The notes under the pieces are model-generated. The model was not told the origin of the DNA. It worked only from the letters and a program-made list of their open reading frames with translations, and made no database searches. Both the position numbers and the translations under genes were made by a program. Positions 2,211 through 64,000 of a stretch of DNA of 64,000 nt are shown here, in pieces (position 1 is the first letter of the stretch; every line of letters starts with the position of its first letter). Location: NCBI RefSeq assembly GCF_964204645.1, contig NC_134030.1, positions 21,784,210-21,848,209 of the forward strand, in the 5' to 3' direction. This DNA is from Tubulanus polymorphus (lineage: Eukaryota > Animalia > Nemertea).

Positions 2211-2721
2211 TGTTGAAATATGTTTTTACGGCAGTATTTAAGAAATACATATCATCCAACTCGGATATCCCTCATCAAGTCGGACACATTTTTTTGCGGT
2301 TCCAAAAGATCCGACTTGAGCGGAGTCTACTGTATTCAAGAATAAGAGTCAAACTTATACAGGCCTATATGCCACAATTTCATCTTTCAATTTTCTGACC
2401 TAAATTCTAAAATTCTAGTGAAACTTTCGACGATTTTGAAATATTTTCTGAAAGCGGTGAAAACTATGCATTTTGTACAAAAATAAATTTACAAAGCAGT
2501 CACTATTTGTGCCCCTGGACTTTGGACCCCGGGGCTGATATGTAGGTCATACGATTATTGAAGGACGACCAGTGATTTTAACACCTTTCGCTTCCTGCTC
2601 AACGCTCGAATATACTGAATGTATCACCGGCGCTGATCATCAAAATCTTATCTTTAACTTCCTCAATTATCAGACGAAGTGGAACTCGATTATTATCCTT
2701 TATTCTGTACTCTGTATCACA

Positions 2722-5700
2722 ATGATGAACACACGTTCGTTCTTGATAATATACGCGATTTTATTACAACTTGGGAACTTAAACAGCGCAGAAACATCTG
2801 GAAATAAGACGCATAATTCAAGTAAGTCACTCGAACCAATGATAGCTTTTTCTGTTGTGTCGATTTCATAGATTTCTGTCGATGAGAATTCAACAATTCA
2901 AGGTGTTTGAGACTCCCCGTACATAGGTCTAGCTATACTAACGGGATCTATAAAGGGCCTGTCATGTGAATAAATTACCTAGAAGATGTTGCAGGCCCGT
3001 ATGCTGCCTTTCTTTGTTGTGGGCAGTTCTCGATTACTGTATAGGAGGGGGAGCGTTTTGTGGGGATTCCCCAAGAAAACTTTGATCATTTAAAGCCATC
3101 AGTTTGAATTCATTACTGGCTAATTTATGTATAGCTGTAAACAAACGACTGTGTAGGACGATACGTGATGGGAAATGTAGTCTAAAAATTCGGAACTAGA
3201 GATTTTGCTGGGGGGAGGGGGTCACGTGGTGGAAAAAGGACCTCAATAGATTATTCGAAGTTTGTGCGTTTTACTGTTTCATAGACTATTCATATTTATT
3301 CATTCGTTTTCAGTGATTTATCCGAAGCCTGTTCCCGATGGAAAACCCGACATCAAAACACAAGGACAATCGATTGAATATATTTGTAGAACTAGTGTTA
3401 AATATCCTACAGTTATATTCCAAAAGAAGAGAAGAGATTCAGAACAATGGGAAACAATTCCAGACGAACTGATTCGTATAACTAGAAATGTGAAACATAT
3501 TACTTCTGCTTCACTAGAATTCAAAGCAGATTTCAAACTGCACAATGGAACAACATTTAGATGTCTCGTTCTTAAGGAAGGCCAAACAGATTTTGATTAT
3601 CTTCAGTTTGATCTAATCGTAGTTCATCGAACTGGTAAGTAACAGTTTTAAAATGTGAACCTTCCCAGTCTGGAATCCTGCTACTAAATAAACATCGAAT
3701 CTATCAAAACAAATTAATATTGAAACACAGCATCTCTGTTACTTTTAAATTACTTCGCAGTCGATTGCATGAATTTATAGTTTAGCAGCTACGTATCAAA
3801 AGTGCGTTTATTGTAGCGTATGACATGTACATTTTAATGCATTCTAGAATTTATAGAAATAATTCTCAATAAGACGGCCATACGACTCAGCGTGAAATTC
3901 ATATTTCTGTTTAACGGATATATAGCCGACAGTTTAATTTGTTGTAGCTTCCTCTTTCATATACCCGTCATTTGTTCATCCATTTCTATCTCCGCACAAA
4001 CATATCTTCTTGTGTCAACTATACTAATTTCAAGGTCGCTTGATGAGTTGTTGATTTTAAATTTTGTATATTTGATATCTAAAAACCTGAATTTCTTCAT
4101 TTAAAAAGTAAATATTTGTCGCCCTCGTCACTTTTGGAATTGGGAATAAGGTTTTTTATTTATGTCTTTTTATTTCAAAAGGGATGTAAAAATAATAAGT
4201 ATCGGCCGTTCTTGTCACTTTCCCAAAAAGGGGTCGATGAGAAACAACCATATTTATTGCGTGGTCTTAATGCACGCGTCAGTAAACTAACCAAACTAAA
4301 CCCAACCACAAACAGTCTAAGTTACTTTCTACATTTGATTGTTTTTCTCATTTCAGATTTGAATCAAATCCCGGCGACTGAAATCAGTAAATCAGGGTCA
4401 GTATCTATTTCACTTAGCGCACTACAAATAAATCATATTCTATATGTGAATCATTTCTTTGTTGTCGATGCTTTTTGTGAAATAATTTTGAATTGATATC
4501 TCACTCGTCTCATTGGCTTCCGATTAACAGTTCACCTATCATTATTCATCTCAATTTTCACATTTTGCCACAAAAGGTAACAGTACGGGCAATTGCAAAA
4601 TATGTGACCTCGATATCGCTACCACGAGCCCTGCCTTTTCACTTCTGAGCCCAGTTGCACAGTCGTGACTTAAGTCCAAAAGTAGTCTTAAATCTTAAGA
4701 CTAGTCTTAATTTCTTAGATTAGCTATAGAACTAAGTTGGTCTTAGACTGGTCTTAAGTCTAAGCTTTGACTATGCAACCGGCCTCTGTTCTGCTGATTT
4801 ATCTTAATTGTAAATTTCGTCCTTTTCATTCAGAGTTCGTCTGCTTACTGCTGAAAATGTGGCCTCGAAAAATAAGGTCATTATAAATTTAAGTAATAAT
4901 CAAACTAACTTGTCAAATATAGTCCCCGGATCCCAGACACAGAGTCGAATTAAACCCACTGAACTGTGAACCTTGATTTAGGATATAAAAGCGAATTGAA
5001 TTTTATAATATAAACTGAATGATTAATTGATTGATATTTGCAGCTTGTGTTGAGGTTTGATTCTATTCTGTTCGTTTCTAGTTTATACCCGCGAATTGTC
5101 ATCCGGTATATTCTACATCCTTCGAGTTTTCCTTATTTTTCTTTCTCTGACCAAATCGGTTTACAGACTAAACTGGACCACAAACCTGACTGGACCATGA
5201 TGATAATTTACATCGCTTGTGGAGCTATCGGTTTCCTCCTCGTCATCGTTATCATCGTTGTCATCGTCATTTGCAGGTTTGTACTCAATAATCTCGGGCA
5301 GATTTCATATCTAAGATAATCCCCCTATGACGTCATATCAAAACGTGAAATAATTTGATAAATCAGTGACGTTTCCAAAAAAGATGTCTTCATTCGTAAA
5401 TTTGTATCTACCTATGCGCCGATTACTGGCTGAGTCAATCTCAAATCAGCAGGAATAATTCAATATAATGACCGAAATATCCGAAATCTAAAATCTCTTC
5501 AACGCTTAAATTACCCATGTTTCAGACGCAGGCGATTGCCAGGTGAAGGTCGTGTGGAGGTTGCGACACCGCAGGTACTCGACGTCTATGACGAGTTGTA
5601 TGATGACATAGATTCTGTTACTGTGACTGACAAACTGCACACCAGCGATCAGAAAGTTACTACAGATCCGTACGTGAATATTGAGGCCGGGAACGGCAAA

Positions 5701-6036
5701 GACACAACTCCGTACATGGATATGGCAGCCGCGAAGGGTAAAGACACAGCTTCATATATAGATATGGAAGCCGGGAAGGGCAAAGACACAACTCCTTATA
5801 TGGATATGGGACCCGGGATAGAAGAGGATACGTACAGGAGTACGGAAACCGGGAAGGACAAACACACAACTCCTTACACGAATACCGGAGCCGAGAAGGA
5901 CAAAGATAGACATAGTTACGTGAATACCGAAGCCGGAAAGGCGCGCCATTTGAAGAAAGATACTGATGAACCCGTGAAAGATGATGTTGAACTTTATTCT
6001 TACGCTACTGTTCAATATACTCGCAATAGGCGTTAG
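2722..6036 (+). CDS. Gene A copy 1: single-Ig type-I receptor with Tyr-repeat tail, ~374 aa. Exons 2722-2821, 3314-3634, 4357-4396, 4834-4876, 5167-5276, 5526-6036
   Basis: Signal peptide MMNTRSFLIIYAILLQLG; Ig-like exon with YIC...W...FRC; TM IIYIACGAIGFLLVIVIIVVIVIC followed by RRRR; GT-AG junctions give one open frame. The two small middle exons are the least certain: they are needed to reconcile phase, and one carries a synonymous aat/aac change between copies. Confidence 0.85.
4647..4786. mobile_element. MITE-like palindromic element
   Basis: Imperfect terminal inverted repeats gagcccagttgcacagtc ... gactatgcaaccggcctc with internal cttaag palindromes; also at ~41273-41412. Confidence 0.6.
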
Positions 6037-7825
6037 AGGGCGCCGCTGAGCAAACAACGACTGATTATACATATGTAAAACATAAGGCTAGAAACAATTG
6101 AAACATTATTTTTCATAATCTGCTGAGCTTGAAAGTAGAATCAGCTGCATGCATACATTATTCATTTCTAAAAATAACAGACCCGGCAGTTTTAGAAATG
6201 AACTGACTACATATTTTATTCTAGTTCACAAAAATGACCCGGTCGACTAGGAGAAACAATTGGGTATGATTCACTAGCCTAAGTTTTAAGTTTTTGATAT
6301 GTACCAGTAGTGTATTTGATGATCAAACTAAGGAACATCAATTCACTTCGACAATCATTCACTTTTAGCAAATGAAGATTAGGTGAAATAACGATGTCAA
6401 ATGATTCAGTTTACCGGGCAGTATTCAAACTGTGAAAGTATAAATTCATGATATTCAGCTACCGATGGCCTTTAAATCGTAGACTGTTATGAGGACTTAA
6501 ATTTTTTAAATGGCAAATTGACATGTCAATCATCTTCAGGGGCGGATCCAAGTAAGGCCGAAGCCTCCCCTTATCTCTTTTGCCAAGAAAATATTCTCAC
6601 AACCCGGATTAGGAATGTAACAAATATAATAGAAAGTCTTTGTCATTCATTTTGTTCTTGATTTACTCTAGATGCCCCCAGAAAATGATCCATTCCTTGA
6701 TTCCCTTAAAAAGATATATAAAATATAGTACAATATTCGCAGTCAATCAGTTGGTTTGTCTCATTCTTTTCTTGATGATTTATTTTCTTTTTTCCTCTTA
6801 ACTACTTCGGTCAAACAAGAAACATTACACGATGGTAAAAGCTTTCCTAAAATAGATGTGCTTTAAGATTTCATTCAGAAGTATCGACAGGATGAGGATT
6901 CCGGAATACTGGACGGTCAAACATTCCACATTGCTGGGACAGTGAACTTCAAAGCTCTATTGCCAAATGACCTTCTTGGAGACAGGTTTGACTAGAGGTG
7001 TTATCATTTATATCGACTCGTATTCTATTCATCCATTATTAGATCAAGCACATTCTAATGATCTTAAAATTTTTATCAATATGTTCATTTCAGTTACTTT
7101 CACTTTGTCTCACTTTAAACCCATGTTTTAGTCTCTGGTTTGCTGTTACACATTTTTTCAGTTAATCAGACGGTTCACAGATCATTTTGTGCCTCGATAA
7201 GTACAAACCAATCACTTTGTGCCTCGATATTTACCAACCATTGATATGTAGATGAACCGACCGATGTGTTTTACCAGGTGTTATCATTATATTGACTCAT
7301 ATTCTATTCATGCACAGCGTTTATCGTTGACTCAATACATTTTGTATAGTTCCATTATTCACCCTCTAAGGATTATATTTTATAGGATACTTCCATTTTT
7401 CAAGATATTTTCTTCGGGCTGATAGAACATCTTACGTGAAGTTAACAATTGATCGTTCAGATTTTTTTGACTTTTCAAATGCATATCAGAATCGAGGATT
7501 AGTTGCTTTGTTTATGGATATTTAGAGTAGTTTCACTTTGTTTTTTTTTCATTAAGGTAAAAATCATTTCCTCATTAAACTCTTTTCACATCTGGGTTTC
7601 GTTTCATGAAAAGTTTTAAGCTTTAGACAGTTAAATATGAATTGTTGTCCTCATTACAAACTTGAAGTAACCAATCATAGCAGCTGACCTTGAGAGATTC
7701 AAGTTATTTTCACTCTGCTTTGTAATATTGGACCCCGAGCGAGACTCCTGGTTTTGATGTACACAGTCTTGTATGCAGTGACTATCCATCACTTGGACGT
7801 TACCAAAAATACAAATGAAATTGAA

Positions 7826-8016
7826 ATGCTGGTCGAATTAATACTAGGAATAGTTCGTTAACTCATTCGTCGCCTAGGAATCTAATTGACGTTTCGTCTT
7901 CGTAGTTCTCAACTTCCGCGACGATTCTAAAATGAGAACTACTAAACCGAAACGAAATTTCGATTCCTAGGTAGTTAAAGAAATACGATCTTATTCCTAG
8001 AATTAATTCGGCCATC
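7826..8016. mobile_element. MITE-like inverted-repeat element upstream of gene B
   Basis: tgctggtcgaattaatactaggaata ... tattcctagaattaattcggccatca are imperfect inverted repeats; also at ~44434-44624. Confidence 0.55.
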
Positions 8017-8105
8017 ATATCACAAACTCCCAATCAGTCTAGTTTTCTGTATGTGATAATGATCTGAAGTTTGTGTCTTTATACTTAGGCAATGAATGAA
8101 CCAAG

Positions 8106-11100
8106 ATGAAGAATCTATGGAGGAATCCGCAGAAGTGTTTAGTGATCTACGTGATTATACTGTTGAATCTCATGGCGAACAACAACAGCCCACAAGCGTT
8201 TAGAGTCAAGAGAAATACAGGTAAGACAACGTGAAAGAACATATCATAGAGTTTATATGGAGAATGTATTACATAAGATGAAACTTATCACCAGACTTTG
8301 GAAACTTGTATTTGAAATATCTGGGACAAAATGATAGTAGCTGAATAGTCCACTTGAACTGATACATTTACCTCGAATGAAAACCCACAATCTCTCAAGT
8401 GTTTTACATTTTACCATTAAACATTTTAACTATTCAATAATTGTATTTTATCTTCTAAAACTCCATCTACACTTGATTCTTATACCCGGGTTATGCGTCT
8501 CCACTACGATGCTGGTTTTCCGCAAAACCTGGGTTTTAGAAACCGTATTGAAAAAGAAGGGTCCACTCCTTATTCAACCACGTTCGCGTAAAACTTTTAG
8601 AATTTTTACTAGAAGTGTAGAAAGTAGACCCGCGCAACGATTGAACTTAAAATTGAACTACAGATTGGTAGAAATCCCACAATAAAATCAGCGAAAGAAA
8701 TTGAAATCAGAATTCAGAATTCATTGTAAACGAGAATATATTTCGAGCAACGTTTCGGCTAAACACAACTATGAGCCAATCATCAGGCGTACCGATACAC
8801 GAGATATATTTAACAAGATATTTATACAGAAAATGAACTGAAGAATGAGTGATCGAAGTTAAATACAGAGTAAAGTTATTCAAAACATAGACAAGGAAAC
8901 AATAGTAGAAAGAGTTAAGCAACAGCAAACAGCAAACTAGGGGTAAAACGAGGAGGTAAATAAAACACAAAACCCGAAACTAAAACGAGGAGGTAAACCA
9001 CAGGGTAATCTAACAATCACAGAATACATCACAGGCTGTGTCTCAAAATCATAGATAATGCGTGTGAATATTAGATCTTAAAAACATCAAATCAGATTAT
9101 TGTTTATTTCTTGTCGAACCTCTTCAAACGGTGACAACTATCGGAAGACAATTTGCTTAAACAAGTCTGGGGCTCTAGTTCCTCTGAAGTCGGTTTAAGG
9201 TGAATGAAATTGAGATGTTAATTGGTCAATTCTGAACAATGGCTCTGACAGAAAGATTGCCATTTATTTCAGCACCTGATGGAGTTGTACTGGACAGTGT
9301 GAATGTATTACCGGGTACAAGAATATTACGTATATTGTGTATTTGATATTTCAGCACCTGATCTAGTTGTACTGGACAGCGTGAATGTATTACCGGGTAC
9401 AAGAATATTACGTATATTGTGTATTTGATATTTCAGCACCTGATGGAGTTGTACTGGACAGTGTGAATGTATTACCGGGTACAAGAATATTACGTATATT
9501 GTGTATTTGATATTTCAGCACCTGATCTAGTTGTACTGGACAGCGTGAATGTATTACCGGGTACAAGAATATTACGTATATTGTGTATTTGATATTTCAG
9601 CACCTGATGGAGTTGTACTGGACAGCGTGAATGTATTACCGGGTACAAGAATATTACGCATATGGTGTATTTGATATTTCAGCACCTGATGGAGTTGTAC
9701 TGGACAGTGTGAATGTATTACCGGGTACAAGAATATTACGTATATTGTGTATTTGATATTTCAGCACCTGATGGAGTTGTACTGGACAGTGTGAATGTAT
9801 TACCGGGTACAAGAATATTACGTATATTGTGTATTTGATATTTCAGCACCTGATGGAGTTGTACTGGACAGTGTGAATGTATTACCGGGTACAAATATGT
9901 TACTGTCGCAGGAAGGTAAAACTGTTAGTATTACCTGTAAACAGAGCAGCTCTGCAGCGACTGGTGTAGCATTCCAGCTACAAGTGAATAATGGACCAGA
10001 AGGGACCTGGATTGCATTACCTTCAGAATCAGCACCAGTTTGGGTTTTTCAGCCCGATGCTCGTAAAATGTATAAATGTGTGGCCATTAATTCAGCCGGA
10101 ATTAAAGAAAGTCAAATCTACCAATCAGATGTAATCAGTGAGTATGCATCACTTATCAAATAATGCTGGGAAAATAGAAAAAAAGTTTCCTGTGCACATG
10201 TTATATTTTTTCGTGCATATAACTTTTATTTCAGGTATAAAGATAAATGAAAACCCGTGTAAACTGCATGAATTCAAACCATCACTAACTTGTACTTGTA
10301 AAGCCACTAGTAAGATTGGTAATCCAATCATCAAAGTAAAATGGTATGCTGATGGATTTACTGAAGGTTCAACGGATATTGATCAGATTCCCGATCAAGG
10401 CGTAAATACTCCGGTGAAAGATGGAGTTATCAACAGGAATCAGATGCGGTTTAATTTAATGCTGTACGCAATATTGATTCAATGTCGGTTATGGAAGTAT
10501 AATGGGATAGAGTTACCGAAACAAAAACTTCAAGAACAAATACTACATCAAACTCCAATGAACGTTACGTGTAAGTTGGAGAATATTTTCATGAGAGATT
10601 TTTCATTCGATATCAGAGTGACAATAATACATGTTACATCGTTTATTCTATTGGTAACTGCCCATAGTTGGAGATTTAAGAGTTACTATTTCATAACGAC
10701 TGGTGATAATGCCTATGAAATTCTTTCGTTTTAATATTTGGTCCCAAGAAGGTATTTCGAATACTGAAGCGAATTGTTAATAATAACATTAAAAGGACTA
10801 GAATATGATTGTGCATGAATTTGCTTTTGAAATCGAACCTACTAGAAAACGATTTCACCTTCAATGATTAGGCTTAAGATTTTGAGCCCACATGGAAAAA
10901 TTGCAGCGAAATTGGTTAAAATGTTGACGTAAAAAGTTCGTTTCTGTAACAATTGTCGTCTTCGGGTATTCTTATGGCTATATCAGGGATTTTTAGTTTG
11001 TAATATGGGACAAAGCTTCTTGAACCGGGACAATAGGATCACGCACAACTCACCAGAACAAAGGATTCTTTTCATGAGTGCGATAGATACGCCACCTATC

Positions 11101-14100
11101 GTTGATATGTATTGTTGCAAAAACAAATAAACTATATTACAATATAATTATGTCGGGAGTTACACCGTTACATTTCCGTCGATTCAAATTTCGACGCCCT
11201 TGATAAACACACATTCCTCGGAGCGCAAGTAATATTTTACCATGTTTTATGGACGGACGTTTTCTCGATTTTGCACCGATCAGTGAAATTGAAGTGGATA
11301 AACATGATATCATCCAAAAATATATTTGCATCTTTATCTTTTAGATTTTCCCGATGAAATTGAAACACCAGATACTTTCACCGGAGAACCTGACATTAGA
11401 AATGAAGGAGATGTTGTAGAATATACTTGTAGAACAGTGATAGGAAGGCCCGATCCTACAGTGATATACCAACAGAAGAGAAGAGATTCTGAACGATGGC
11501 AGCCAATTCCTGATCCACAACCTCGTAAAGTACCTCTCAAAATGGGTTTAAAAGGTTTTGATACGACGTACAAGTTCAAAGCTGATTTCAAACTGCACAA
11601 TGGAACGTCATTTCGATGTGCTGTAAAGGAGAACCTTACGTTTCCAGAACCTCGACAATTTAATCCAATCATTGTTCATTGTAAGTAACAGTTTCTTTCT
11701 CGAATTCGAGAAATAAGTAATTTTCCCTGCAACAATACAGACCCCAGTGATAGTACAGACCTATCCACACATATAGTATGACACAATGTAACCATGCTAA
11801 GGAGGAACATGGCAGAATCTCATGATGTCATCAGGTTCAAATCCCTGCCGAGGGAGGAACGTGGCAGAATCTCATGATGTCATCAGGTTCAAATCCCTGC
11901 TAGGGAGGAACGTGGCAGAGTCTCACGATGTAATCAGGTTCGAATTCCTGCTGAGGGAGGATGTGTCTACTATGTGTCTACTGTGTTTGTACTGTGACAG
12001 AGTCTCACGATGTCATCAGGTTCGAATCCCTGCCGAGGATGATGGGTCTACTATGACAGGGCTTAAGAACTGTGCTAGGTTAGATACTAATGTTTCTTTG
12101 TTTTTCAATCAGATTTTGCTGCACCAGTTTACAAGAAATCCAGTGAAAATGAAACAAATGCAGCGTATATTGTAACAGTTAATAGTTACCCATTGACTCA
12201 ACAAGTTACATGTGACCCTCCAGCTGTCGTTCAAAAACTATCAAACTCTCAGTGGAATATAACGATACCTATCGTAAACAGTACCACAACTGACTATAGA
12301 GGGCGGTGTTTGGTTGATGGTATTAATGAAAGGGTTATTGATGTCGCTGGTTATCATCACGCCGGTCCAACTGATGAACCAGGTAAGATTCCGGGTCACG
12401 ACTGGATGAATTTTACATGAATTTGAAGATTCAAATGATTCAATTCCATGACATTATAAAACTCGAGGCCATCATCTCTTAACTCGAAATCATTTCTACA
12501 CAATCAAACAATTTACTTATGAAAGTCGTTATTTTCTAAATTGTCACAAAACCTATTAATATATTTCAAAGTCTCAATTTACTAAGTCATTTGTCATTAT
12601 TATTGGGTCTCATTTTACTAGGTGTAAGTCGTCATTCATTTAAAGCGTCACATACATACATATTACAAAAAAATAATTTTTGTATTTTACCTAAAGTGTA
12701 AATCATTTAGATTAGTCAGCACAGCGGAGGAGTCTCGTGACGTCATCAGATTTTAAATCCGTGCGCGATGACGTAATTCTCTGTGTCGTCAGAATTGAGC
12801 GTTTTCTATTATTATCTGTGAATTCATCACATTCAAATATTACACAATGATTTAGCATCTTTAACTTTCTATCTTGAGGCTGTTTGACCCAATCAAGGAA
12901 CGATTAATTTTCTCCCATTTTAAAAACAACTTATTTGCTTTATTCAGAGACTATTTGAGCTTTGAAATTAAGGAACAATTAATTTTTGTTTGACCTAGTT
13001 AATTATTCAATTAAATTGCTGTTACTTTTATCAATAGTTACAATGGAACTATTTCTAGCTTTATCTAATTCAATTCAATCGCATCACCGATTAGTTTGAA
13101 TTTCCGTTTCAGATGCAGGAAATGGAGGAATTGTGGCTGGTGTTGTAATCGGTATATTACTGATATTACTGATTCTAATAATACTGTTTATACTGTGGCG
13201 TCGTGGCTGCTGTAAGTTTTACATAAAACCATCAATAAATCTGAAAAACAATAATAAACAAACTGCAGAAATGAAATACTCTATTAGGGGTAGAAAACCT
13301 AATGATGAACTGGTGGAAATTGTTAGTTCTATAATATATCATATACAGAATGCTAGAAATCCAAAAGTAGTGAACACAGCTGGAAGAATTCAGGGGTCCC
13401 AAGGTGGCCAGATACAGTTCATTCTCAATTATCTGTTCAAATTTCATTCATGCAATTGAATTCAAGAATGTTTGGAACTTAGAAGAACAGAATGTTATCA
13501 TTTCTGGGATTCAGCACGGGTTGGGTCGTAGTTTCAGATGGCAGCAAACATGAAATGTGCTACGACCAAACATTCACCGATTCCATAACAATCATTTTGA
13601 TAGAAACCGCCGGCATAGGTTTTCTTAGCCTCCAGGAGAAGCTACTAAGTAACATCGTTCTCTTCACAAATAACGGTGTTTGAAAAAGTATCCATTTTAT
13701 AATGTTTAGCATCATTCAACTTTCAATCAATTTTCTAGACACAATACGCGCATTATTCAAACCAGAATTTAGATGCACGAGACGCATTAAAAATCTAAAG
13801 CCAGAATATGCATAATGTTTATTTATTTTCGTCTGACATCGATCACTTTCAGATCTGAATCAGTGCGGTCTAAATAAAATATCGTTTTTATATCTATTGT
13901 AAAATGCAGCATTAATTGAATTATCTAATGGCGAATGAATTACTCGTAGATGCACAGTCTTCGGTACAGGCTCGATACAAGTCTCTGCGGGGTCATCAAT
14001 CAACGTTGATAGGTTAAGATTTCTTGCCTACGTAGGTTCTGCATTTTCTCGTTGGGAAGTATCGTTAAGTTGTTGGGTGACGATAGTAATAAATTATCAC

Positions 14101-20100: not shown

Positions 20101-23100
20101 ATGAATGCGCATGTAACATGTTCATGTAAATTAATGCACATGTTGCATGTTTAGTTCTCTGATATATTTCAGAAACTCTGATGGATAATAAAGTTGTAGG
20201 ATATGGAGGTTTGTAAATAGTTCAATCACAAACCAGTTTTCATCGTAAATAATCTGTTTGATTTTTCTCAATTTATATTTCAGTGAGTCCAGAAGAGATA
20301 AGTGAGTTCTGATTGATATTTGTTAATATTCTCAGTACAGTAGACTGCGCGCTTGCCGCTGATTTCATGTTGTAATTCGTCATATTTACCTGTTTATAAG
20401 TTGCAGTGATTTTCTATATTGATAGATTCTAAACTACGTGAATTAGCCGATAAAGAGTTTGAAGACAGGAAAGGTACCGTACACATTACAAAGTGTGATG
20501 ATGCTTGAATGGATTGTTTTGATATCGGTTACCCTAGATCCGGGTGTCGTACATAGAAAGCAAGCTAACCATTAGACCATGGGCGTATAAATTAGTCTAG
20601 TTTATACGCTCATGAGTAGACCAATAGAACTGTTTAGTGTTTATACAGCTTGTCCTATATGCGGAACGCTGTGACCTTTTTTGAGCCCAAAAAGTTCATT
20701 TTTGCCCTGAATTCCGAGACCTGTAGCTTCCGAATGGTTTGCCATTTTTCATTGAAATTCGTTATGGATATTTTTCGAAGGGCTCTTAAACATATCAGAT
20801 GGGCTGACGTTGAATAATGGAATTTAGTAATGTTTTAAATTTTATTGATGTTTATGATCAATGTTTATTACAGTCGGTATAAAGACACTTGTAGAGATAG
20901 TGCCTCTAATACTGAATATACCGCACCAAATCAGCACTGGTAAGTGACTACACTGAAACTGGATGTTTGAATTGAAATTCAATACAGTAAACTTTAAATT
21001 TGTCGAGAATCAGGAAAATCGGTTTATCACAAACTTAAGGAATCTTTATTTGAATTTAATTTAATTTGTAGACTTGTATTCAGCTGGACGAGATCCAGTT
21101 ATTCTGCCGGATCGAGCAGGTATTGTATAAGTCCGTAAAAAACTTAAGATAACCAGTTTAATTCCATTCCATAATCATGCCGTTATCAAACGCCAACATA
21201 TTTCAGGGAATAAATCCCGCAAATCTAAATTCAGTGGAAATACCATTCTTTATAATGCCTTGTACTTCATCGGTCCCAACTGTTGCATCATGAAGGACTT
21301 TCACTGTGAACAAAATTTGAGTTTTTTAAGAGCATTAGCCTGAAATATTCTGCAACTGATCTTTGTCCCTGAAAGGACGATTAATTCTTCTAAGTTCTTG
21401 TAACGAATCCTTAAACTGCTCGTTATTAAAACCAGAAATCGCTCTTCCGTCATATACCTAATTGTTTGGTTAAGGCCCTGAAAATGGGGTTCTAACCATG
21501 GTTTACTGGTATTTTTAATGTCAAAATGCAAACTTAAAGCAACAACGGTTTTATAATGAAACCACACTCAATGAATGCTGTGTCTATGTTTGCTGTTTTT
21601 ATGTGAATTTCAGTGGAATATTTCAAGGAAGAATTCATTAATGCAATACAATCTGATGAATCATTGACAACTGCTACTCAAACTGCTTTAGATAACGGTA
21701 AGTAACATCTACAGTAAACTACATTTGCATCTACAGTAAACTGCATTTACATCTACAATAAACTACATTTACATCTACAGTAAACTAAATTTACATCTAC
21801 AGTAAACTACATTTACATCTACAGTAAACTACATTTAATACATCTACAGTAAACTACATTTACATCTACAGTAAACTACATTTACATCTACAGTCAACAA
21901 TTAGATACGTTTATTCACTAAGATTGTCAATCATAGAAATTTGTTTGTGGTTTTTTAGAATCAAGTAAAATCAACGAATTCTTGAGGAAAGAAAAGTCGA
22001 ATGGTAAAATTGTTTGATAAAATGCGGATAATTTGTTTGTTTTCACGAACCGAAAAATAATTCAAACGTTTTTCTTCTATTTCTTAGTTAATAGAATTTA
22101 TGGTGAAGTGAAAAAGAGAATAGAATCAATATCTACAGGTTTGTATTTTAATGATTTTCTATCAATTCTTGCATTTAAATGTCGGATATATTTCCTCGTG
22201 TTGAGGTTTCTTTTCATAAAGCATGTTATAATATATCATATTTCTAATAAACATATCATATCATATCATATACCACTATCATATACAATGTCATCAAGTA
22301 CATATATAAAATACGTATATCACATATCATATCACGTCATACCAGACATCATTTATGCTTGTAAAATGTGATTTTGAAGGTGATGAGTTTTGTTTTACTT
22401 TTTATCACGGATTGATTCATTGCTGAATTTACGTTATATTTCTATTTGTGATTTCAGAGGAATTAAATGAACGAGGAATCGTAGTTTATAGAAGTGAGTA
22501 AAAGTCAATTTGTCTGATTTGAATTCTAATCTGTTCATCAATTCCATAGTTTTCCTGTTCCATAGTTACCCTGATCCCATAAACTCCTAACAAGAGACTC
22601 CCAACACTAGAATCATAACCCCCCAGTTATTTTTAATTCAGATCTAAATCAAATTAAGTAAGAATTTTATAGTAAAAGTGAACTGTATGAATTTAACTGT
22701 TTAGATCTAATTAATGTATATTTATTAGTTACTGTTGTTTTCTGTTTTTCAGTAAAAGATGAAACAGCGAGTAAGTACTGATAACAACTTCCATGTTAAA
22801 GTTTAGATAAATATATATATGTCATGTCCTGTTTTAAATAGTAGTGGTTCTTATTAAAATCCAGTGAAACCGTTTTACAGATGATGAAAATACTTCCTTC
22901 AAGACTAAAGGAAGGATTGTGAAAGAAGATCATGTTTCTCTGTCCCTGCAGTAATCTATTATGTGTATTATTTTTCAGTGAGTCACATCAAACCAATTAT
23001 TGCAAACAGAATCCTAGATTTTGAAGGTGAATACTGTTGACTGTTAGGTGTTCTTATTAACGAATTAAACCGGTACCGAGTGGTCGACTAGTACTGAGTT

Positions 23101-26100
23101 AGGGTGAAGGTCGACTGGCATTGAGTAAGGGTGAAGGTCGACTGGTACTGAGTAAGGGTGAAGGTCGACTGGTACTGAGTAAGGGTGAAGGTCGACTGGT
23201 AGTGAGTAAGGGTGAAGGTCGACTGGTACTGAGTAAGGGTGGCGGTCGACTGGTACTGAGTAAGGGTGAAGGTCGACTGGTACTGAGTAAGGGTGGCGGT
23301 CGACTGGTATTGAGTAAGGGTGAAGGTCGACTGGTACTGAGTAAGGGTGAAGGTCGACTGGTAGTGAGTAAGGGTGAAGGTCGACTGGTATTGAGTAAGG
23401 GTGAAGGTCGACTGGTACTGAGTAAGGGTGAAGGTCGACTAGTACTGAGTAAGGGTGAAGGTCGACTGGTATTGAGTAAGGGTGAAGGTCGACTGGTATT
23501 GAGTAAGGGTGAAGGTCGACTGGTACTGAGTAAGGGTGGCGGTCGACTGGTACTGAGTAAGGGTGAAGGTCGACTGGTACTGAGTAAGGGTGAAGGTCGA
23601 CTGGTACTGAGTAAGGGTGAAGGTCGACTGGTACTGAGTAAGGGTGGCGGTCGACTGGTATTGAGTAAGGGTGAAGGTCGACTGGTACTGAGTAAGGGTG
23701 AAGGTCGACTGGTAGTGAGTAAGGGTGAAGGTCGACTGGTACTGAGTAAGGGTGAAGGTCGACTGTATTTTTAAGAGGATATTTGACGCTGTAGCAGCAT
23801 ATGAAAAGTTTACAACATCAGTCGATGTCACAGTTGTTTCTAATGAGCATTATATAATTACAGATTCACTAGAGACTGTTTTAGAAGAGAAATGTAAAGA
23901 CAATCTCAGTATGTGGTCATCAAAACAGTGGGAATATGATATATCTACCGCGAGTAAGTTCAAGGTGAAATCAGTTTGTGATTTATAATAGAATTCTATT
24001 GTATAAAAACTTGTCTATTGTTTATTACATGTAGTGTCTGTACTCAGTGAATTTACCAGTACAACTTTAAAGACAAACACAGGTTATTGGAAACAAGTCA
24101 AAGAATGTTTCGGTAAATGATAAATTCTTGTTTCGCTTCTGAATGTTTTTAGTGATCAGATTTTTATGTTTTGAATAATAATTGTTTGTTCTGTTTGAAT
24201 AGGAGATAAAATTGACAGTGAAAAAAATACAACTGAACTTACAAAAACAGGTGAATATCAATAGAATAACAGTTCTTTACTCAAATTAACAAATTGAATT
24301 TTGAAGTTGGATATCGAGTCTAGATATTTTAATTTCTCTGGTAAACTATTCCAGAATTTCGCTCCTTGAATTTTCATAGATATATACTTGTATTTAGATT
24401 TAGCAAAGATTTTGGGTGTTCCTGAGAATGAAAAAATCTTAGTGAAAATATTAGTTTATTTACTCCACAATTATACAATTGCGCAGAGCAGAAAATTATT
24501 TTACAATATACATTGCGACATTTAACATTTGAAATGTATTAAACATTTGCGTATATACAACGCCAGTTTTTTAAGGGTTTGGCAATTTGACTTGAACAAA
24601 TCATACAATTTTACGTTATTGGGGAATCTCTAATAACGCTCCGGGATGTATCTTGCTCTGGATTCCTGGGGCAGACGAGTAAAAAGTGATATTCGTCCCC
24701 CACCGCCTCTAAATCACACTTTTGGCACGGCCTATTGGCACGGGCAATTATATAGGACTATATATATAACCACTGACCAAGTGAACTAGTTCTATTGGTC
24801 TAAATTTTTAAGTGTGTAACTGTAGATGAGTTAAATCCGTTGCGTTTAAACTAGGAAGTTACTCATTATCATCGGTTCAATTCTCGGCTAGAAATCGAGC
24901 ATAGCTTGAAAAAAAACATGTTTAGAGTGTAAAACTAAGAGGTGTTTGAAAGTCGTCTTTGTTTACATTTTTTATCGGTATGAAAATTAAGTCAAACAAA
25001 TTTTGTTTGTTTATACGTAGTTGATGAGTGTTTGGGTGAATGCATTAAAACAATGGTTGATGAATGGAATCCTGGTGAGTACCCCTCATATGGTGGCTGA
25101 TAAGGGCCACGAAAATATGTCCTGACAAAAAAATAATTGCGTAATGAAAAATGAATTTCCATCTAAAAATATTCGTGAGTAAAAATAATTTGAGTTCAAT
25201 TTGAGTACAGGACTCAAATGCAAATCGTAATTTCAGTACCTGAGTACCATAAGCTATTGGACCTTGAGTGAGTACCATTTATTGACTGTCGGAATAAGTC
25301 AGTATGATGAGAGTACATGCGGAGTACTTTAGCAAAAATAATAGACATGTATACTTATAATCGCGCTGTTGTTTTAATTCACCATTAATTAATTATTACT
25401 CACACAATCAGTTAGACAGCTGTCAATTCGACGCCTGTGATAACAGTTTGTTTTGTAATTAATTGTGTGCTCAAACATGTCTGTCAACTTTTATAGTATT
25501 ATATAAATAGAATGTAAATCCATGAACAGCAGTTGAGTTTGAGACGAGTCTTGGAGCCTGATACATCTTTCAGGCAAATTCCCAAGCTACTCGATTGAGA
25601 ATCTAAAGAATAAAATCGTCTACGTTTAGTGCTGAAAACTACTAGCTTTCTCATTGTTGCATAACTCAGGATTTAATCGTAGCTGGAGCTTCCCCGAAAG
25701 ACGAGTTAGAACAATTAGTTTTGTTAAAGTACAGTCATACAGTCACTCAACTGAGTACCCGGCCCCGGTTACATGAATTGTGTGTAAAGGAATTAAAATG
25801 ATGCTATTCAGAGATCAAGTTGAAACAAACTGCAAAATGAACAAGGTTAAGTGACAGAATTTCATGTTTTGTTGTTTGTAGATGCTTTCAAGTACAACAA
25901 GATGATTATAGGGACAGGTGAATATATCGTATATGAATCACCTAGGGCCGGTTCTATAGTAATCATTATAGTTAAAACCAGTCTAAGACGATTTCGGTTT
26001 TACAGCCGATCTAACAACTTAGAACCAGTTGTAAGATTTAAGACGAATTTTGGATTCAATTTTCGATTATGGAGCCGGCCACTGGTTCAATGAAAAACCA

Positions 26101-32100: not shown

Positions 32101-35100
32101 CTGTTTAATAAAGTTTTCTAATTTAAATATCCATCTTTGAAATAAATATATAGCGAGTTTAGCCCGCCGCACACGGCAAAACATTTGTTTCGCCGAAACA
32201 GAAAACACGTTTTTCAGAAAACGTTTTTTGCTCGTGAAGATCGTTTTTCAGTTCGGCGTTTTGTGTTTTGCCTCCCCCGCACACGGCATGACAAAAAACA
32301 TCGAAAACGTTTTTGCACGAGGAAAAAACGTTTTTTGGGTGCCGTCTGCGTTGGGCTTTATTATTCAACTTAAAATCTGTCTCTTGCATGTGCAAGTCAC
32401 GGAGTAAACGTTCTAATTTCTTAGAGAATGTCACAGAGTTAACCATTAATTGTTTTTTCCAAATACAAATGTTTACGACAAACCGCAGTCTTTAAAAATC
32501 TTAATAAATAACATCCAGGGGCTCTTAAACCTATCCTTAACATACAGGTTGAAATATATTTTATAGAGAATGTTGCATTAAGTTTAGTTTGTTTGCACGA
32601 AATCATTTTAACCCACAAGTTAATGATTCAACGCTTTACAATTGTAGGAAAAATGCCAGGGGTGTAAAAGTACAATAGTGAATATAAGTACACGCTTGGG
32701 GTAATATAAATTATCAAATCAGCCACGTTTTAGGAAATTTAAAGAGGGGGAACTTAGGGTACTAAAATACAACCAAATACAGCCAAATACAAACAAATCA
32801 ACCAAATACAACAAATAAAACCAAATACAACCAAATACAATAATTAGTTGGAAATAGAAAGAGATCATTGATAAGATGACGGATAATTAATGCATTCAAC
32901 TTGAATCTATGTAAATAACTGAATTTTTTCATAAGATGGCCTTTTTCCTCCTACACAATAAGTGGCATTTTTACCGGTGGCATTTTTCCTATGTCGCAAA
33001 ATTTTTAATAGTTTCTAAATGTATCTCAATTCGAAGTGGTTTCGCGAAGTTCAGTAAACAGAGTGCAATCAAAGAGAAAATGTAATTCATCCCCAAAACA
33101 TTGCAAATTGGGCACATTCTTTCATTTCTAGGTATATGGAAATTATGTGAATATGTCTATCGGGAATAAATCTATCCAGGAAAATTATGTCCCAGGGAAT
33201 AAACGCCCTCTGAAAAAATATCCCTTTTCTAAGAAAGGACAAAATGTCCCAGTCTATCATTACCGGTACTTATTTGGTAATTAAGAAAATTTCATATCAA
33301 AATAACACGAGAGTTCAAACTTGTTAATTATGTAAATTTCAAACTAAACATCAAAAGAAAGAATTCATAAGTGATCATACGAATTATAAAATTTTAGTAT
33401 CAGTTCGTTTTGCTTATGAGAATTGTTGTCAACTCAGTAAGAAATCAAAACAATTATTTCATTCAGGGTAATCCTGATAATGAATATCTCAGTGTATCAG
33501 CAAATGACTTCACTTTAATTCAAATTCGTAGAATTCGATAGATGATTCCATTGAGCTTAGATTGTTTACCAGATACAGTTTTACACCAAAAATTAATCAT
33601 TCTACGCTTTACCTCAATGAACAAAGGATAACGCGCCCTAACTCTGCTAACACCGGTAAATTATGCGAATACTTCGTCACTATCATTAGAATTTTGCATA
33701 AATACATATTTTCTAATGAGTCTAAATTTTCATATCCGCAGACCTTGCAACCATACATGGCAACAGGGGCAACGCACATATCAAATAATTTAAACATTAC
33801 GTCGATTGGAAGTTTCAGGCGCCTACCTTTTTGAATAATCGAAAACATAGCTCTCATAGCTTTATCGTAAAGATATTTTCTTGCTTTTGCAAAACTTCCG
33901 TTCCAGTTAAATGTAACTCAGAGATACACATTATCTTCAACTTCAATCTCCAATTCCTGATTACCGAACATAAATTTCTGAATTTGCTTAATTCTGGTTT
34001 TACTTCGCACAAACAAAGACTAATATTTTCGTTTTATTGACGTTTATCCCGAGTTCAGATTTGCTATAAACGATTAAGTTGGGTTGCCACGGTCATTTCA
34101 AAAAGTCCTAAATATCATTCAAAAATAAAAAAAAAGGAATAGGCCACAGGTTTTCTTGTCCTTCTGTCTTGTCTATAATAATTTACGCATATGTCACTAA
34201 TTTGCAATTTTTCCTTCAGCCCAGTACTGCCCCCTGGTGACTGTATGAGATGTAACAATTCCGTTATTTGTATTGTAGAAGAGATTTTTGAAGCGATAAA
34301 AGGCGAATATTTTCAAACTCCCGAATTTAGAAGTAAGTTTCCAATAAAATCAGAACCTGTTTTAACAACCAGAACTCAAATATTAATATCTGTATGTATT
34401 GTATTATTATTTATAGGATCAGTTGTGACTGCAGTGAATGAAGCTATCCAGAATTCAGGTATTTGTTAAATATTCTTCAAAAGTTCGAATTCCGTGTTTG
34501 AATTGAGCTCAGTTTGACTGAAGGCGCTTTCTTTTTCAAAATGTAAACTTATATTTTACAGATAGATCACAACACGGCAAAACACCAAACTATGAAGCTG
34601 CAGGTTTGTAAAACTATAATTTCTGTAAATGAATTTGACTTGATGTGGCTGCTACACAGGACCGAATATCATAGATTAGGGGGCAAAATATTCCCCTGGA
34701 CCCAGTTTTATAGACTGGTATTATCTTTAACCCGGGAGTTAACTTAATTGAAATTGAATCAAGTTAGCCCCCCGGATTAAAGTTAATACCAGTCTATAAA
34801 ACCGACCCCTTGGCCCTGGAAACTTTTTGAAAATTGTCAGTAGTTAACATAGTTTCTCAATGTTGCTATGGTGGTTGTCAGCCTGTTTGAGGATTTTCCC
34901 CACGAGGATCATTCATTTATTACGTATGCAAAAAATTCAGAAAAAGCCTCGAGTAAGCTGATAATAGTTAGATCGAGTCCACTATGTAGAAAAAGAGTGG
35001 ATGAAAATGTAGTCACGTGATAAAATTCATCCGGAGCAGAATTGAATTTTAAAAATCATTAAGGTGCGTACAATACGCATTATTATTTACCCCTCCCCCT

Positions 35101-36658
35101 TTTGTTCACAAAAGTATGCAATTTAATAAGACCCCCTTTGTACAATTTGATTTTTGAGTTTAACCCCCTCCCTACCCAAAATGCGTACCTAATAATTGGG
35201 TGACCCCTTAAAAGGTAACTTTGAACCCGCCCTATGAAACTAGGCCCATGATGATGACCACAAAGATGAGGTAATTTTCAGTTGCTTTCCCTTAAGGATT
35301 TTATTCTATTATTTCAGTGAAGTGGATAGCTGATAAAATGAAAGGTAAATTGACTGGTAATAATACTCAATTTCGTGATGAGTTTGTGTTGATGTTTACA
35401 AAAGAATTCTAATTTCAGGTTTCACGGTTAAACCATCTGAAACTTATGGTATGTAATATAATTGTTATATACAGTTGATTATAACGGTCGCTGTCATCGT
35501 TGTTGTCACTGTCACTGTTCACTCAACACGAACATTTATCAGAGAACAAATTTGTAAAATCAAACTCAAATTCAATGAAAATACCATTTATAAATCGCCA
35601 AAATTCATTATGAAGTCATATTTTTCATTGGTCCCAATAGTGGCTTGACTATATTTATACATGTATCTTGTGTGGATGCCTCATCTGTCAGACAACTGGG
35701 CGGGAAATTGAGTAACAATTCATTAAAAAATCCTGACGTTTTTTTCAGAGAGTAATGAATTTGCTAGACTTGTACGAGCAAAAGGTAATGAATGAATTAT
35801 GTGTGTTAAAATTGATGTTATCGATTATGATAATGTTTTATGATGCTATACGTAATTTAATTTCTGTTTCAGTAATTGAAAAATCAAGAAATTTGATGGA
35901 TGAGATACGTGCTATAACAAATAAAAGTAATCAATATTGACTTCAATAAACATTTTACTGACTCGATAATTCCATATTCATGGATTCATGTTTCCACATA
36001 TATATATATATATAACGTGTCTTGTGGTCCCCAAACCGGAAAATCAGGAATTTCAAAATAATGTTCTTTAAATTCATTTTGCGCTTCAATTTTCTTCGGC
36101 GATCTTTTTTTGAAAATCTCCTTCATCCACGAATCACCAGTAAATGTTGACGTCACTGTAGTGTATGATGTTATCTGCTCAATTTCCATCTGGAAAATGA
36201 AAAATCACCCATGAAATACTCGGGTTTATTGACTTCATGTAATTGTGAGAACTATCCATAAATTCTGGAGCGGGTGATATATAGTTGTATAAAAACAGTT
36301 ACAAGCTGAACACATCTAAAACAGAGCAAACTCTAGGGGCTACTGATAAAGTATTGTGAATATAAGTTAAAGTTGACGGGTATCTACACTTAGGGAGTGT
36401 GCAGTTGTATTTGGTGTTTGGTTTATATTGTACATATATCTATTTATAGAAGCTCCTCGTAAAGAAACTGCTGGTGATCGTAGATCAGGTATTAACCGAC
36501 CAGTGAGTGATGATGGTGGGTCACCTGAAGGTGGTTTAGTGAAATATGAAGATGAACCTAAAGGTGCCTGTAGTCAGAGTGCTGCTGATGATAGTCACAC
36601 AAGTGACACCGCATCGAGTGGTGATCGTGAGCGGGGTGATATCGGTACACAAGTCTAG
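8106..36658 (+). CDS. Gene B copy 1: Ig-superfamily-like type-I receptor with a very long micro-exon-encoded cytoplasmic tail (~1490 aa, ~61 coding exons)
   Basis: Exons: signal peptide 8106-8220 (MKNLWRNPQKCLVIYVIILLNLMA...RVKRNT); Ig-like 9847-10137, 10235-10570, 11345-11680, 12113-12382; TM 13113-13211; 54 internal tail exons from 14400-14474 to 35873-35926; terminal exon 36450-36658 ending GTQV-stop. Every junction is GT-AG phase 1 and the joined frame has no internal stop. Confidence 0.85.
9262..9893 (+). repeat. 82-bp minisatellite made of the splice acceptor plus start of gene B exon 2 (8 acceptors)
   Basis: tttcag|cacctgat recurs at 9273, 9355, 9437, 9519, 9601, 9683, 9765 and 9847. 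Confidence 0.95.
9847..12382 (+). other. Four Ig-like ectodomain exons of gene B (291, 336, 336, 270 nt; all phase 1-1)
   Basis: One domain per exon, each with paired Cys (VSITC..W..YKC; LTCTC..W..IQC; EYTC..W..FRC; VTC..YRGRC). The fourth is the most degenerate. Confidence 0.8.
11800..12050. repeat. Intronic ~39-bp tandem repeat with tRNA B-box-like core
   Basis: Units ggcagaatctcatgatgtcatcaggttcaaatccctgc; expanded as a 78-bp unit in copy 2. Confidence 0.8.
16138..16251. mobile_element. MITE-like element (family also at 34698-34810 and ~54250-54363)
   Basis: Inverted ends ccgggcttatagactggtgttaactttaa ... ttaaagataatacccgcctataaaaccgg; a related copy sits elsewhere in the gene. Confidence 0.65.
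18420..18970. repeat. ~300-bp intronic tandem duplication specific to copy 1
   Basis: gttaatgagaaatc...atccagatgtattt...aaattctagtt occurs twice here and once at ~56700-56950. Confidence 0.8.
21705..21893. repeat. 22-bp minisatellite (acatctacagtaaactacattt)
   Basis: About 8 units; shorter arrays at ~27640-27760 and ~59753-59830. Confidence 0.9.
23082..23765. repeat. 27-bp intronic minisatellite (ggtcgactggtactgagtaagggtgaa) x~25
   Basis: Near-perfect tandem units between exons 22979-23026 and 23864-23953. Confidence 0.95.
26153..32021 (+). repeat. 15-micro-exon cassette II (~265 aa): 26153-26170, 26609-26656, 26745-26831, 27000-27047, 27551-27634, 27828-27872, 28039-28089, 28761-28805, 29350-29367, 30222-30269, 30530-30616, 30698-30775, 30868-30915, 31097-31150, 31986-32021
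   Basis: Duplicate of cassette I; all exon length differences are multiples of 3. Confidence 0.9.
31387..31875. mobile_element. Non-autonomous DNA transposon-like insertion
   Basis: TIRs aataaagacgtttccagtttcaaggcg ... cgcctagaaactggaaaccctttatt; absent from the homologous intron of cassette I. Confidence 0.65.
32158..32360. mobile_element. Foldback/MITE-like element
   Basis: Ends agcccgccgcacacggca ... tgccgtctgcgttgggct with internal aaaacgtttt palindromes. Confidence 0.6.
32930..34070 (-). mobile_element. Degenerate non-LTR retrotransposon (LINE) ORF2 3' fragment
   Basis: Minus-strand peptides KLFDMCVAPVAMYGCKVCG...PVLAELGR (33609-33857) and a frameshifted RMCPICNV..DELHFLFDC CCHC-type motif (~33060-33120), typical of the post-RT C-terminus of LINE ORF2. 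Confidence 0.7.
34279..36658 (+). other. Gene B tail final block: 34279-34332, 34417-34458, 34562-34603, 35318-35344, 35419-35448, 35749-35784, 35873-35926, terminal 36450-36658
   Basis: Phase 1-1, length 3n, GT-AG. There is no second copy in the window to confirm these, and extra exons in 32022-34278 could have been missed. Confidence 0.7.
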
Positions 36659-42300: not shown

Positions 42301-42665
42301 ACGCGAATATCGAGGCCGGGAACGACAAAAATACGGCTCCGTACATGGATATGGCAGCCGCGAAGGGTAAAGACACAGCTTCATATATAGATATGGAAGC
42401 CGGGAAGGGCAAAGATACAACTCCTTATATGGATATGGGACCCGGGATAGAAGAGGATACGTACAGGAGTACGGAAACCGGGAAGGACAAACACACAACT
42501 CCTTACACGAATACCGGAGCCGAGAAGCGCAAAGATAGACATAGTTACGTGAATACTGAAGCCGGAAAGGCGCGCCGTTTGAAGAAAGATACTGATGAAC
42601 CCGTGAAAGATGATGTTGAACTTTATTCTTACGCTACTGTTCAATATACTCGCAATAGGCGTTAG
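39383..42665 (+). CDS. Gene A copy 2. Exons 39383-39482, 39949-40269, 40985-41024, 41460-41502, 41794-41903, 42155-42665
   Basis: Same structure and splice sites as copy 1, intact frame, few amino-acid changes. Confidence 0.85.
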
Positions 42666-63800: not shown

Positions 63801-63956
63801 GATGTTTATTATCAATGTTTATTACAGTCGGTGAATTTAATCAAATAAAGACACCTGATGATCAAATAAAGACACAAGATGCATCATTCGAACGCGTAAA
63901 AACACCTGAAGAAATATTGCCTCTAACACTGGATATACCGGCACAACTCAGCACCG
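45834..63956 (+). CDS. Gene B copy 2 (3'-partial; continues beyond window)
   Basis: Exons 45834-45948, 47611-47901, 47999-48334, 49034-49360, 50293-50562, TM 51302-51397, then tail micro-exons from 52580-52654 to 63828-63956. Splice sites are conserved and the coding indels I found are all 3n. Confidence 0.85.
47019..47655 (+). repeat. 82-bp splice-acceptor minisatellite, copy 2 (8 acceptors)
   Basis: Acceptors at 47037 + 82n up to 47611. Confidence 0.95.
49476..50210. repeat. 78-bp intronic minisatellite x~8.5
   Basis: Unit gtgacagagtctcacgatgtcatcaggttcaaatccctgctgagggaggatgtgtctactaggacaggggtttgtact. Confidence 0.95.
60188..60588. mobile_element. Copy-2-specific TIR element carrying a tRNA-like segment
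   Basis: Perfect 15-bp inverted repeats gtggctactcgtacg (60198-60212) and cgtacgagtagccac (60565-60579); internal TGGTCTAGTGG...GGTTCGAGTCT; empty site at ~22245 in copy 1. Confidence 0.75.
61368..61619. repeat. 27-bp minisatellite, copy 2, x~9
   Basis: Same unit as 23082-23765. Confidence 0.95.
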
Positions 63957-64000
63957 GTAAGTGACTACACTGAAACTGCATGTTTGAATTTGAATTCAAT

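Follow-up and report, generated by a model that had tools for sequence, protein, structure and literature searches.

A tandemly amplified two-gene immunoglobulin cassette in the nemertean Tubulanus polymorphus

In a 64,000-nucleotide stretch of the genome of the nemertean Tubulanus polymorphus (NCBI RefSeq assembly GCF_964204645.1, contig NC_134030.1, forward-strand positions 21,784,210 to 21,848,209; hereafter the window, numbered from its first letter), we find a cassette of two genes that encode immunoglobulin (Ig) domain proteins; it is tandemly amplified, and the window contains one unit and the beginning of another. The upstream gene, which we call gene A, is followed 2 kb downstream on the same strand by gene B; both are predicted to encode type I membrane proteins, and they have one family-specific Ig domain in common, while their cytoplasmic tails are very different. 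These genes are annotated in RefSeq but uncharacterised, and among clustered Ig receptor genes the cassette represents a new, lineage-specific variant. Judging from the conserved arrangement of the two genes and the motifs in their predicted products, we consider it probable that A and B act together as a receptor and its signalling chain, most likely in innate immune recognition.

The second unit begins near position 37,060 and is 84-98% identical to the first in blocks. Its two genes are placed as follows.

39383-42665, + strand: unit 2 gene A, RefSeq-type P0089, 374 amino acids, 99% match
45834-64000, + strand: unit 2 gene B, closest RefSeq protein P0100, running past the window end

Genome-wide, there are 10 copies of the A-type exon at 93-100% identity, all on contig C6 between 21.75 and 22.09 Mb at a spacing of 26-43 kb, and each of these is followed 7.6-9.8 kb later by a B-type exon, so that the array comprises at least 10 A-to-B units over about 365 kb. 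Across 3.3 kb the array copies differ by 0.5-4.4% with no simple positional pattern, and no Ig exon of A or B in the array has a disrupted frame. The protein tree hinted at a three-unit higher-order repeat, which we dropped when the nucleotide distance matrix for the 3.3 kb did not confirm it. We regard an origin of the repetition in faulty assembly, through haplotigs or through repeats collapsed or expanded in tandem, as extremely improbable: although the units are highly similar and short-read DNA contigs pile up with many variants, the ten copies have distinct sequences, indels, block identities of 84-98% and minisatellites of different lengths, RefSeq holds distinct gene models for them, and ten different copies are impossible from two haplotypes.

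The arrangement is also found beyond the array. The B-type version of the shared domain, domain 3 of gene B, occurs at 24 loci genome-wide, and about six further, older and diverged cassettes have an A-like exon 7-12 kb upstream of a B-type exon on the same strand; they include the following (positions of the A-like exon, the B-type exon and, where given, a NACHT frame).

Contig C6, 18341694, then 18353278, then NACHT at 18368639: A-to-B order, same strand
Contig C9, 294768, then 306057, then NACHT at 320191: A-to-B order, same strand
Contig C6, minus strand, 22296718, then 22285284/22277305, then NACHT at 22260062: A-to-B order
Contig C6, 22758554, then 22765939: A-to-B order, same strand
Contig C6, 22811190, then 22822143: A-to-B order, same strand

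Some A-type exons have no B neighbour, for example those in a cluster at 4.2-5.07 Mb of C9 and the one at C6 18225692, and B-type exons with no detected A lie at C6 21684921, 21722245 and 18434233. The original prediction, made from the sequence of the window alone, had described the pair as duplicated as a unit, which turns out to be an understatement, and had proposed the linkage of A and B in other copies as a check; the two are linked in at least 10 array units and about six diverged cassettes.

The two genes are related through a single domain. A BLASTP alignment of the domain encoded by the gene A Ig exon (3314-3634) with that of Ig exon 3 of gene B (11345-11680) shows 50% identity and 66% positives over 101 amino acids (E 7e-30), and both exons are stop-free, in frames starting at 3316 and 11347, respectively. 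The homology proposed at the outset thus stands, and all of the sequence motifs then quoted are present. An AlphaFold model of the gene A domain, built on 12 family members, has nine strands and a mean predicted local distance difference test score (pLDDT) of 91.6, and Foldseek matched it to Ig domains with probability 1.00 and TM-scores of 0.65-0.70, the best matches in the PDB being MyBP-C C1, the CD96 V domain, IgNAR V and Rst D1. Two cysteines, C24 and C83, are invariant across the family alignment and correspond to the B-F strand cysteine pair. Pfam sees the shared domains weakly and below threshold (ig, E 0.0018; C2-set_2, E 0.066). Because the model is confident and its matches to Ig domains reach these TM-scores, we take the shared domain to be real, and at the level of the fold it belongs to the immunoglobulin superfamily.

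Each of the two shared exons ends in phase 1, and the intron after it opens with gtaagtaacagttt in both cases, as had been claimed; this start is retained in almost all of the 30 family exons that we inspected. The conserved segment comprises approximately the first 13 intron bases (gtaagtaacag[t/a]tt; 3635-3648 and 11681-11694) and is kept even where protein identity is only about 50% and the rest of the intron is unrelated. Conservation of this extent exceeds the normal donor consensus, and the segment may be a splicing control element.

A maximum-likelihood phylogeny of the shared Ig domain, which had been suggested together with the original prediction, placed the B-type domains in one shallow clade with short branches and support of 100/100 and the A-type domains in several deeper clades. 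This topology therefore indicates that the split between A and B is older than every cassette, that the cassette was then copied as a unit, and that the A- and B-type domains do not homogenise each other. In some of the cassettes with conserved order and strand, the A domains retain only 47-67% identity.

We also compared nonsynonymous and synonymous differences (pN/pS) among the array copies. In gene A the ratio was 0.41-0.45 (Ig exon) and 0.40 (tail), and for gene B it was 0.78, 0.30, 0.56 and 0.51 for Ig1 to Ig4; pS itself was about 0.04-0.09, near the intron divergence of 0.035-0.059. No positive or diversifying selection was detected among the array copies, as pN/pS did not exceed 1 in any of these exons (A Ig, A tail and B Ig1-Ig4), and the pattern looks like relaxed purifying selection. 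Units differ most in the membrane-distal Ig1 of gene B, where a variable patch lies in the middle strands.

These values bear on allorecognition, which the original prediction offered as one alternative with reference to Hydractinia Alr. In this reading the array would be a histocompatibility-type locus comparable to Alr or to Botryllus fuhc, its copies having diversified to tell self from non-self. The Alr genes likewise form large clusters of divergent type I Ig-like genes with tyrosine-motif tails that standard profiles recognise poorly; they are extremely polymorphic, bind homophilically and control colony fusion. Tubulanus, in contrast, is a solitary worm. Its large tandem array of Ig genes and its variable distal B domain would fit such a role, and nemerteans of the genus Lineus reject xenografts with memory, the molecular basis being unknown (PMC2248247). 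Against this, pN/pS lies between 0.3 and 0.8, the array copies are only 0.5-4.4% apart, conservation within the family tree is highest for the shared B domain, and no homology to Alr was found among the database matches that we looked up. The allorecognition reading thus finds no support, and we consider it quite improbable.

The window has the character of eukaryotic DNA, with GT-AG introns and a G+C content of about 35%. The gene models were obtained by mapping the RefSeq proteins of the family back onto the window, and their splice junctions are solely those of the RefSeq models. Gene A (2722-6036, + strand) has six exons and encodes 374 amino acids: a signal peptide, a single family-specific Ig domain, a 28-residue stalk encoded by two micro-exons, a transmembrane helix and a 169-residue tail.

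2722-2821, + strand: gene A exon 1, start codon and signal peptide, ending in phase 1; matches residues 1-33 of P0004/P0089
3314-3634, + strand: gene A exon 2, the single family-specific Ig domain, phase 1-1
4357-4396, + strand: gene A exon 3, 40-nt stalk micro-exon, phase 1 to 2; matches the P0004/P0089 stalk
4834-4876, + strand: gene A exon 4, 43-nt stalk micro-exon, phase 2 to 0
5167-5276, + strand: gene A exon 5, transmembrane helix, with one Cys within the helix and one at its cytoplasmic end
5526-6036, + strand: gene A exon 6, 169-residue cytoplasmic tail, stop codon at 6034-6036

The two stalk micro-exons put the Ig exon and the transmembrane exon back in frame; in truncated paralogue models that lack the helix (P0001, P0087) the stalk exons are skipped or the exon 4 donor is read through. 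The depth of piled-up DNA contigs is very high at 4601-4800 (up to about 209,000 summed), 6001-6400 and 7601-7800, which points to high-copy interspersed repeats in an intron of A and in the spacer between A and B.

The phosphotyrosine-type tail predicted for gene A is borne out by its sequence, which has 12 tyrosines, among them those of three YxxM and three YxN motifs, of YDDI, an acidic site, and of YSYATV at the end (the motifs include YMDM, YIDM, YMDM, YVNI, YTNT, YVNT and YSYATV). The A paralogues, including diverged ones, keep these motifs, with 3-12 repeated 14-residue YxxM units across paralogues, and YSYATV is conserved among them. Phosphorylated YxxM binds p85, phosphorylated YxN binds Grb2 and a terminal S/T-x-V binds class I PDZ domains according to established SH2 and PDZ specificity. 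Once phosphorylated, the A tail would recruit PI3K p85-type proteins through YxxM and Grb2-type SH2 proteins through YxN, as well as an SHP-type phosphatase through YSYATV.

This layout, with one Ig domain on a stalk, a single transmembrane helix and a tail with YxxM and YxN motifs, resembles that of CD28, ICOS and DAP10, and like DAP10 gene A could serve a larger receptor as its signalling subunit. The corresponding motif is YMNM in CD28 and YINM in DAP10. Unlike those proteins, A has neither a stalk cysteine for disulfide dimers nor a charged transmembrane residue for pairing, its tail is much longer with its repeated YxxM units, and no CD28-family protein was among its sequence or fold matches, and no sequence homology was detected. 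The resemblance is therefore one of working principle by analogy, and not of membership in the CD28 family.

Gene B (8106-36658, + strand; RefSeq LOC141906744, P0099) has about 63 exons and encodes 1526 amino acids. P0099 maps exactly on 8106-36655 in 63 exact-match segments that account for 1508 of the 1526 residues, and 57 of the 63 segments are tail exons with a median length of about 48 nt. The order is a signal peptide, four Ig-like exons of which the third is the shared A-type domain, a transmembrane exon and a tail of about 1040 residues.

8106-8220, + strand: gene B exon 1, start codon and signal peptide
9847-10137, + strand: gene B Ig-like exon 1, membrane-distal; Pfam Ig_2 below threshold
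10235-10570, + strand: gene B Ig-like exon 2
11345-11680, + strand: gene B Ig exon 3, the domain in common with gene A
12113-12382, + strand: gene B exon 4, membrane-proximal Ig-like domain, edges to within about 2 nt
13113-13211, + strand: gene B transmembrane exon, uncharged helix and Cys-containing juxtamembrane segment
14399-35925, + strand: gene B cytoplasmic tail, about 56 micro-exons (median about 48 nt)
36450-36658, + strand: gene B last exon, acidic Ser-rich C-terminus, GTQV followed by a stop; class I PDZ-ligand type

The long micro-exon tail and the PDZ motif that had been read from the sequence are both there, with about 57 tail exons and the GTQV end. The tail holds two copies of a module of about 260 residues. 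The first of these modules gave a match to an ADP-ribosyltransferase exoenzyme below threshold (E 0.001, 18.9 bits against a cut-off of 23.4), which we treat as chance because it recurred neither in the second module nor in profile searches of PDB sequences. By its sequence the terminal TQV is a class I PDZ ligand (S/T-x-hydrophobic), and a T-[Q/V]-V C-terminus is present in 7 of 13 paralogues with helical tails.

Tandem repeats occur within the B genes of both units.

9183-10056, + strand: 82-bp minisatellite, upstream of and overlapping the start of the B Ig1 exon

This element (about eight copies; also at 46865-47820) repeats the splice acceptor and the first 42 nt of the Ig1 exon, and each copy could in principle be spliced in as a phase-1 exon of 42 nt, leaving an intron of 40 nt; only the last copy is used in the RefSeq model of gene B. 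A 27-bp minisatellite is present among the B tail exons of both units (22947-23894, with about 25 tiled starts, in unit 1, and 61233-61640); it encloses one exact-match B exon (22981-23025), a second begins at 23863, and it contains an open frame of GEGRLVLSK repeats. In unit 2, but not in unit 1, a 78-bp tandem repeat with 8 tiled starts and a span of about 11 unit lengths (49462-50307) separates the gene B exons for Ig3 and Ig4.

With both predicted proteins described, the comparison to classical paired receptors made in the original prediction can be assessed. A and B would, in that case, be an activating and an inhibitory member competing for one ligand. Like KIR, LILR, SIRP, PIR and Ly49, they are clustered and rapidly duplicating receptor genes with common ectodomain sequence and different cytoplasmic wiring, and A ends in a YxxV resembling an immunoreceptor tyrosine-based inhibitory motif (ITIM). 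True paired receptors, however, have near-identical ectodomains, and one member has an ITIM while the other is short-tailed with a charged transmembrane residue that recruits DAP12 or FcRgamma. The ectodomains of A and B contain one and four Ig domains, respectively, with 50% identity in one domain only, and their A- and B-type domains fall in separate old clades with no sign of homogenisation. Neither transmembrane helix contains a charged residue, neither tail contains a canonical ITIM (I/V/L/S-x-Y-x-x-I/V/L) or an activation motif (ITAM), there is no short-tailed partner, and the long-tailed member is not the motif carrier. The analogy to SIRP, LILR and KIR fails on these grounds, and we regard a classical pair as very improbable. 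Of the original proposal, the analysis supports two separate, co-oriented type I membrane protein genes that have one Ig domain in common, differ strongly in their tails and are copied as a unit; it does not support the classical activating/inhibitory arrangement or the allorecognition role.

Gene B also has sister genes with another kind of tail. At least three of the diverged cassettes have a large open frame with NACHT and leucine-rich repeat (LRR) regions past the B ectodomain. The B paralogues P0003, P0008 and P0109 match Pfam NACHT above the curated cut-off (E 3e-14) and combine an Ig ectodomain, a transmembrane helix, a cytoplasmic NACHT domain and an LRR-like end. Membrane-bound NOD-like receptors (NLRs) with Ig ectodomains have already been described in the sea cucumber (PMC13133943). 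Compared by layout with these AjNLRC4-like receptors, Ig, transmembrane helix and NACHT occur in one protein in P0003, P0008 and P0109, which sit in the A-to-B cassette arrangement, whereas gene B of the window has an orphan helical tail and a PDZ-type end in place of NACHT.

The NACHT-LRR frames belong to one subfamily with at least 18 intact single-exon open frames (about 920-1000 amino acids) and several broken copies, found at 17.5-18.45 and 22.26-22.31 Mb of C6 and on C8, C9, C12, C19, C32 and C56, some of them directly downstream of B-type ectodomain exons. Other family members depart from both layouts. The RefSeq model P0007 (823 amino acids, on a 16.48-Mb contig) combines a ubiquitin C-terminal hydrolase (Pfam E 2.6e-23) with a C-terminal family Ig domain at residues 718-822 and may be a fused gene model or contain a stray exon copy. 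The short member P0014/P0096/P0097 (LOC141906756, C6) consists of a shared-type Ig domain, a domain like B Ig4 and a hydrophobic C-terminus that may be a glycosylphosphatidylinositol (GPI) signal, suggesting that the Ig3-Ig4 pair is an older building block.

To search for relatives elsewhere, we ran a profile search against 1.84 billion representative proteins. Fourteen matches reached E <= 1e-28, and all 12 of those looked up, that is, all except P0013 and the 50% cluster partners of P0099, were "uncharacterized" proteins of T. polymorphus. Two weaker T. polymorphus fragments also matched (E 4e-18 and 7e-12), and the next matches were generic Ig proteins, such as a butterfly hemicentin-like protein, or bacterial beta-repeat proteins. 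The B tail is carried by 15 proteins, all from T. polymorphus. In current databases the Ig family is thus known so far from this species only.

Taken together, these observations suggest a working model. Gene B would be a cell-surface recognition receptor whose distal Ig domains bind ligand and whose tail is a scaffold tethered via a PDZ protein, and gene A would be its co-receptor or docking subunit, by analogy with CD28 and DAP10. Joint action of A and B is suggested because both genes stay intact and adjacent through deep divergence; the argument for functional coupling runs solely through this conserved linkage, from which we infer it. The immune reading gains some independent support because B-lineage paralogues carry NACHT-LRR, and these sisters, together with the organisation of the array, probably point to innate immune recognition.

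The principal alternative is that A and B are mere neighbours in one segmental-duplication unit and function independently, for example in junctional or synaptic adhesion or as scaffolds, in an array that is neutral or driven by dosage. Tandem duplication accounts for co-copying without any shared function, pN/pS is below 1 everywhere, A-type genes without a B neighbour and B-type genes without a detected A exist, and the T-x-V end of B is typical of adhesion proteins of the JAM, CAR and nectin type, which like B are type I Ig-superfamily proteins with a PDZ-binding end. Those proteins, however, are single-copy and conserved across phyla, with two or three Ig domains and tails of tens of residues, whereas gene B has a lineage-specific tail of about 1040 residues and belongs to a 10-copy array. 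Independent neighbours would also have to have kept A-to-B order and strand in about 16 cassettes, including those with A domains at 47-67% identity, and to have remained intact, both of them, in all of these; and the NACHT-LRR modules of B-lineage paralogues argue for immune signalling over plain adhesion. We therefore see independence as possible but doubtful.

Several points nevertheless weigh against cooperation of A and B in immune recognition. Tandem segmental duplication copies neighbours together irrespective of whether they cooperate, and the only sequencing run guessed to be RNA placed nothing on 2601-8600; four runs of unrecorded kind behaved as short genomic DNA contigs. A complex prediction for the A Ig domain with B Ig3 returned no answer (score 0.00), which speaks neither for nor against binding. 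The gene B tail has no recognisable domain (no Pfam match above cut-off, and none by phmmer against the PDB or in the ESM Atlas), and its AlphaFold model for residues 483-1100, although all-helical, is poor (pLDDT 36) and unsuited to a fold search. Gene B of the window has no NACHT exon, none being found in the window or in the alternate 10-kb pieces of the array that were covered. PDZ-ligand ends are more typical of junctional and synaptic adhesion molecules than of immune receptors. The closest ITIM-like motif, YSYATV of gene A, is neither a canonical ITIM nor an immunoreceptor tyrosine-based switch motif (ITSM) because position -2 is Tyr. Finally, databases hold few nemertean proteomes, so that "species-restricted" may mean "not yet sampled".

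A more specific form of the proposed cooperation, which we think unlikely, is that A together with B, or A with the NACHT-bearing sisters of B, forms a hard-wired heteromeric receptor in which a diversified multi-Ig sensor is coupled to a single-Ig PI3K/Grb2 signalling chain for nemertean-specific innate recognition. If this were true, the sensor would have as its tail either a scaffold anchored through PDZ or a switch of the NACHT-LRR type, nemerteans would have an Ig-based innate system with the "ligand-binding chain plus signalling chain" logic of vertebrates, and the cassette would be a candidate for the molecular basis of graft rejection in Lineus.

Almost nothing is known about the immune molecules of nemerteans, although rejection of grafts with memory was demonstrated in Lineus decades ago, and the array described here provides a concrete and testable candidate. 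The two genes of the cassette have stayed together over many duplications, and the large one is joined in some copies to a putative scaffold tail and in others to NACHT-LRR. Even without cooperation of A and B, the locus would show clearly how new receptor genes are assembled from shuffled Ig exons and tails made of micro-exons. Should the two cooperate, a spiralian would have evolved independently both the logic of a receptor with its own signalling chain and NLRs at the cell surface.

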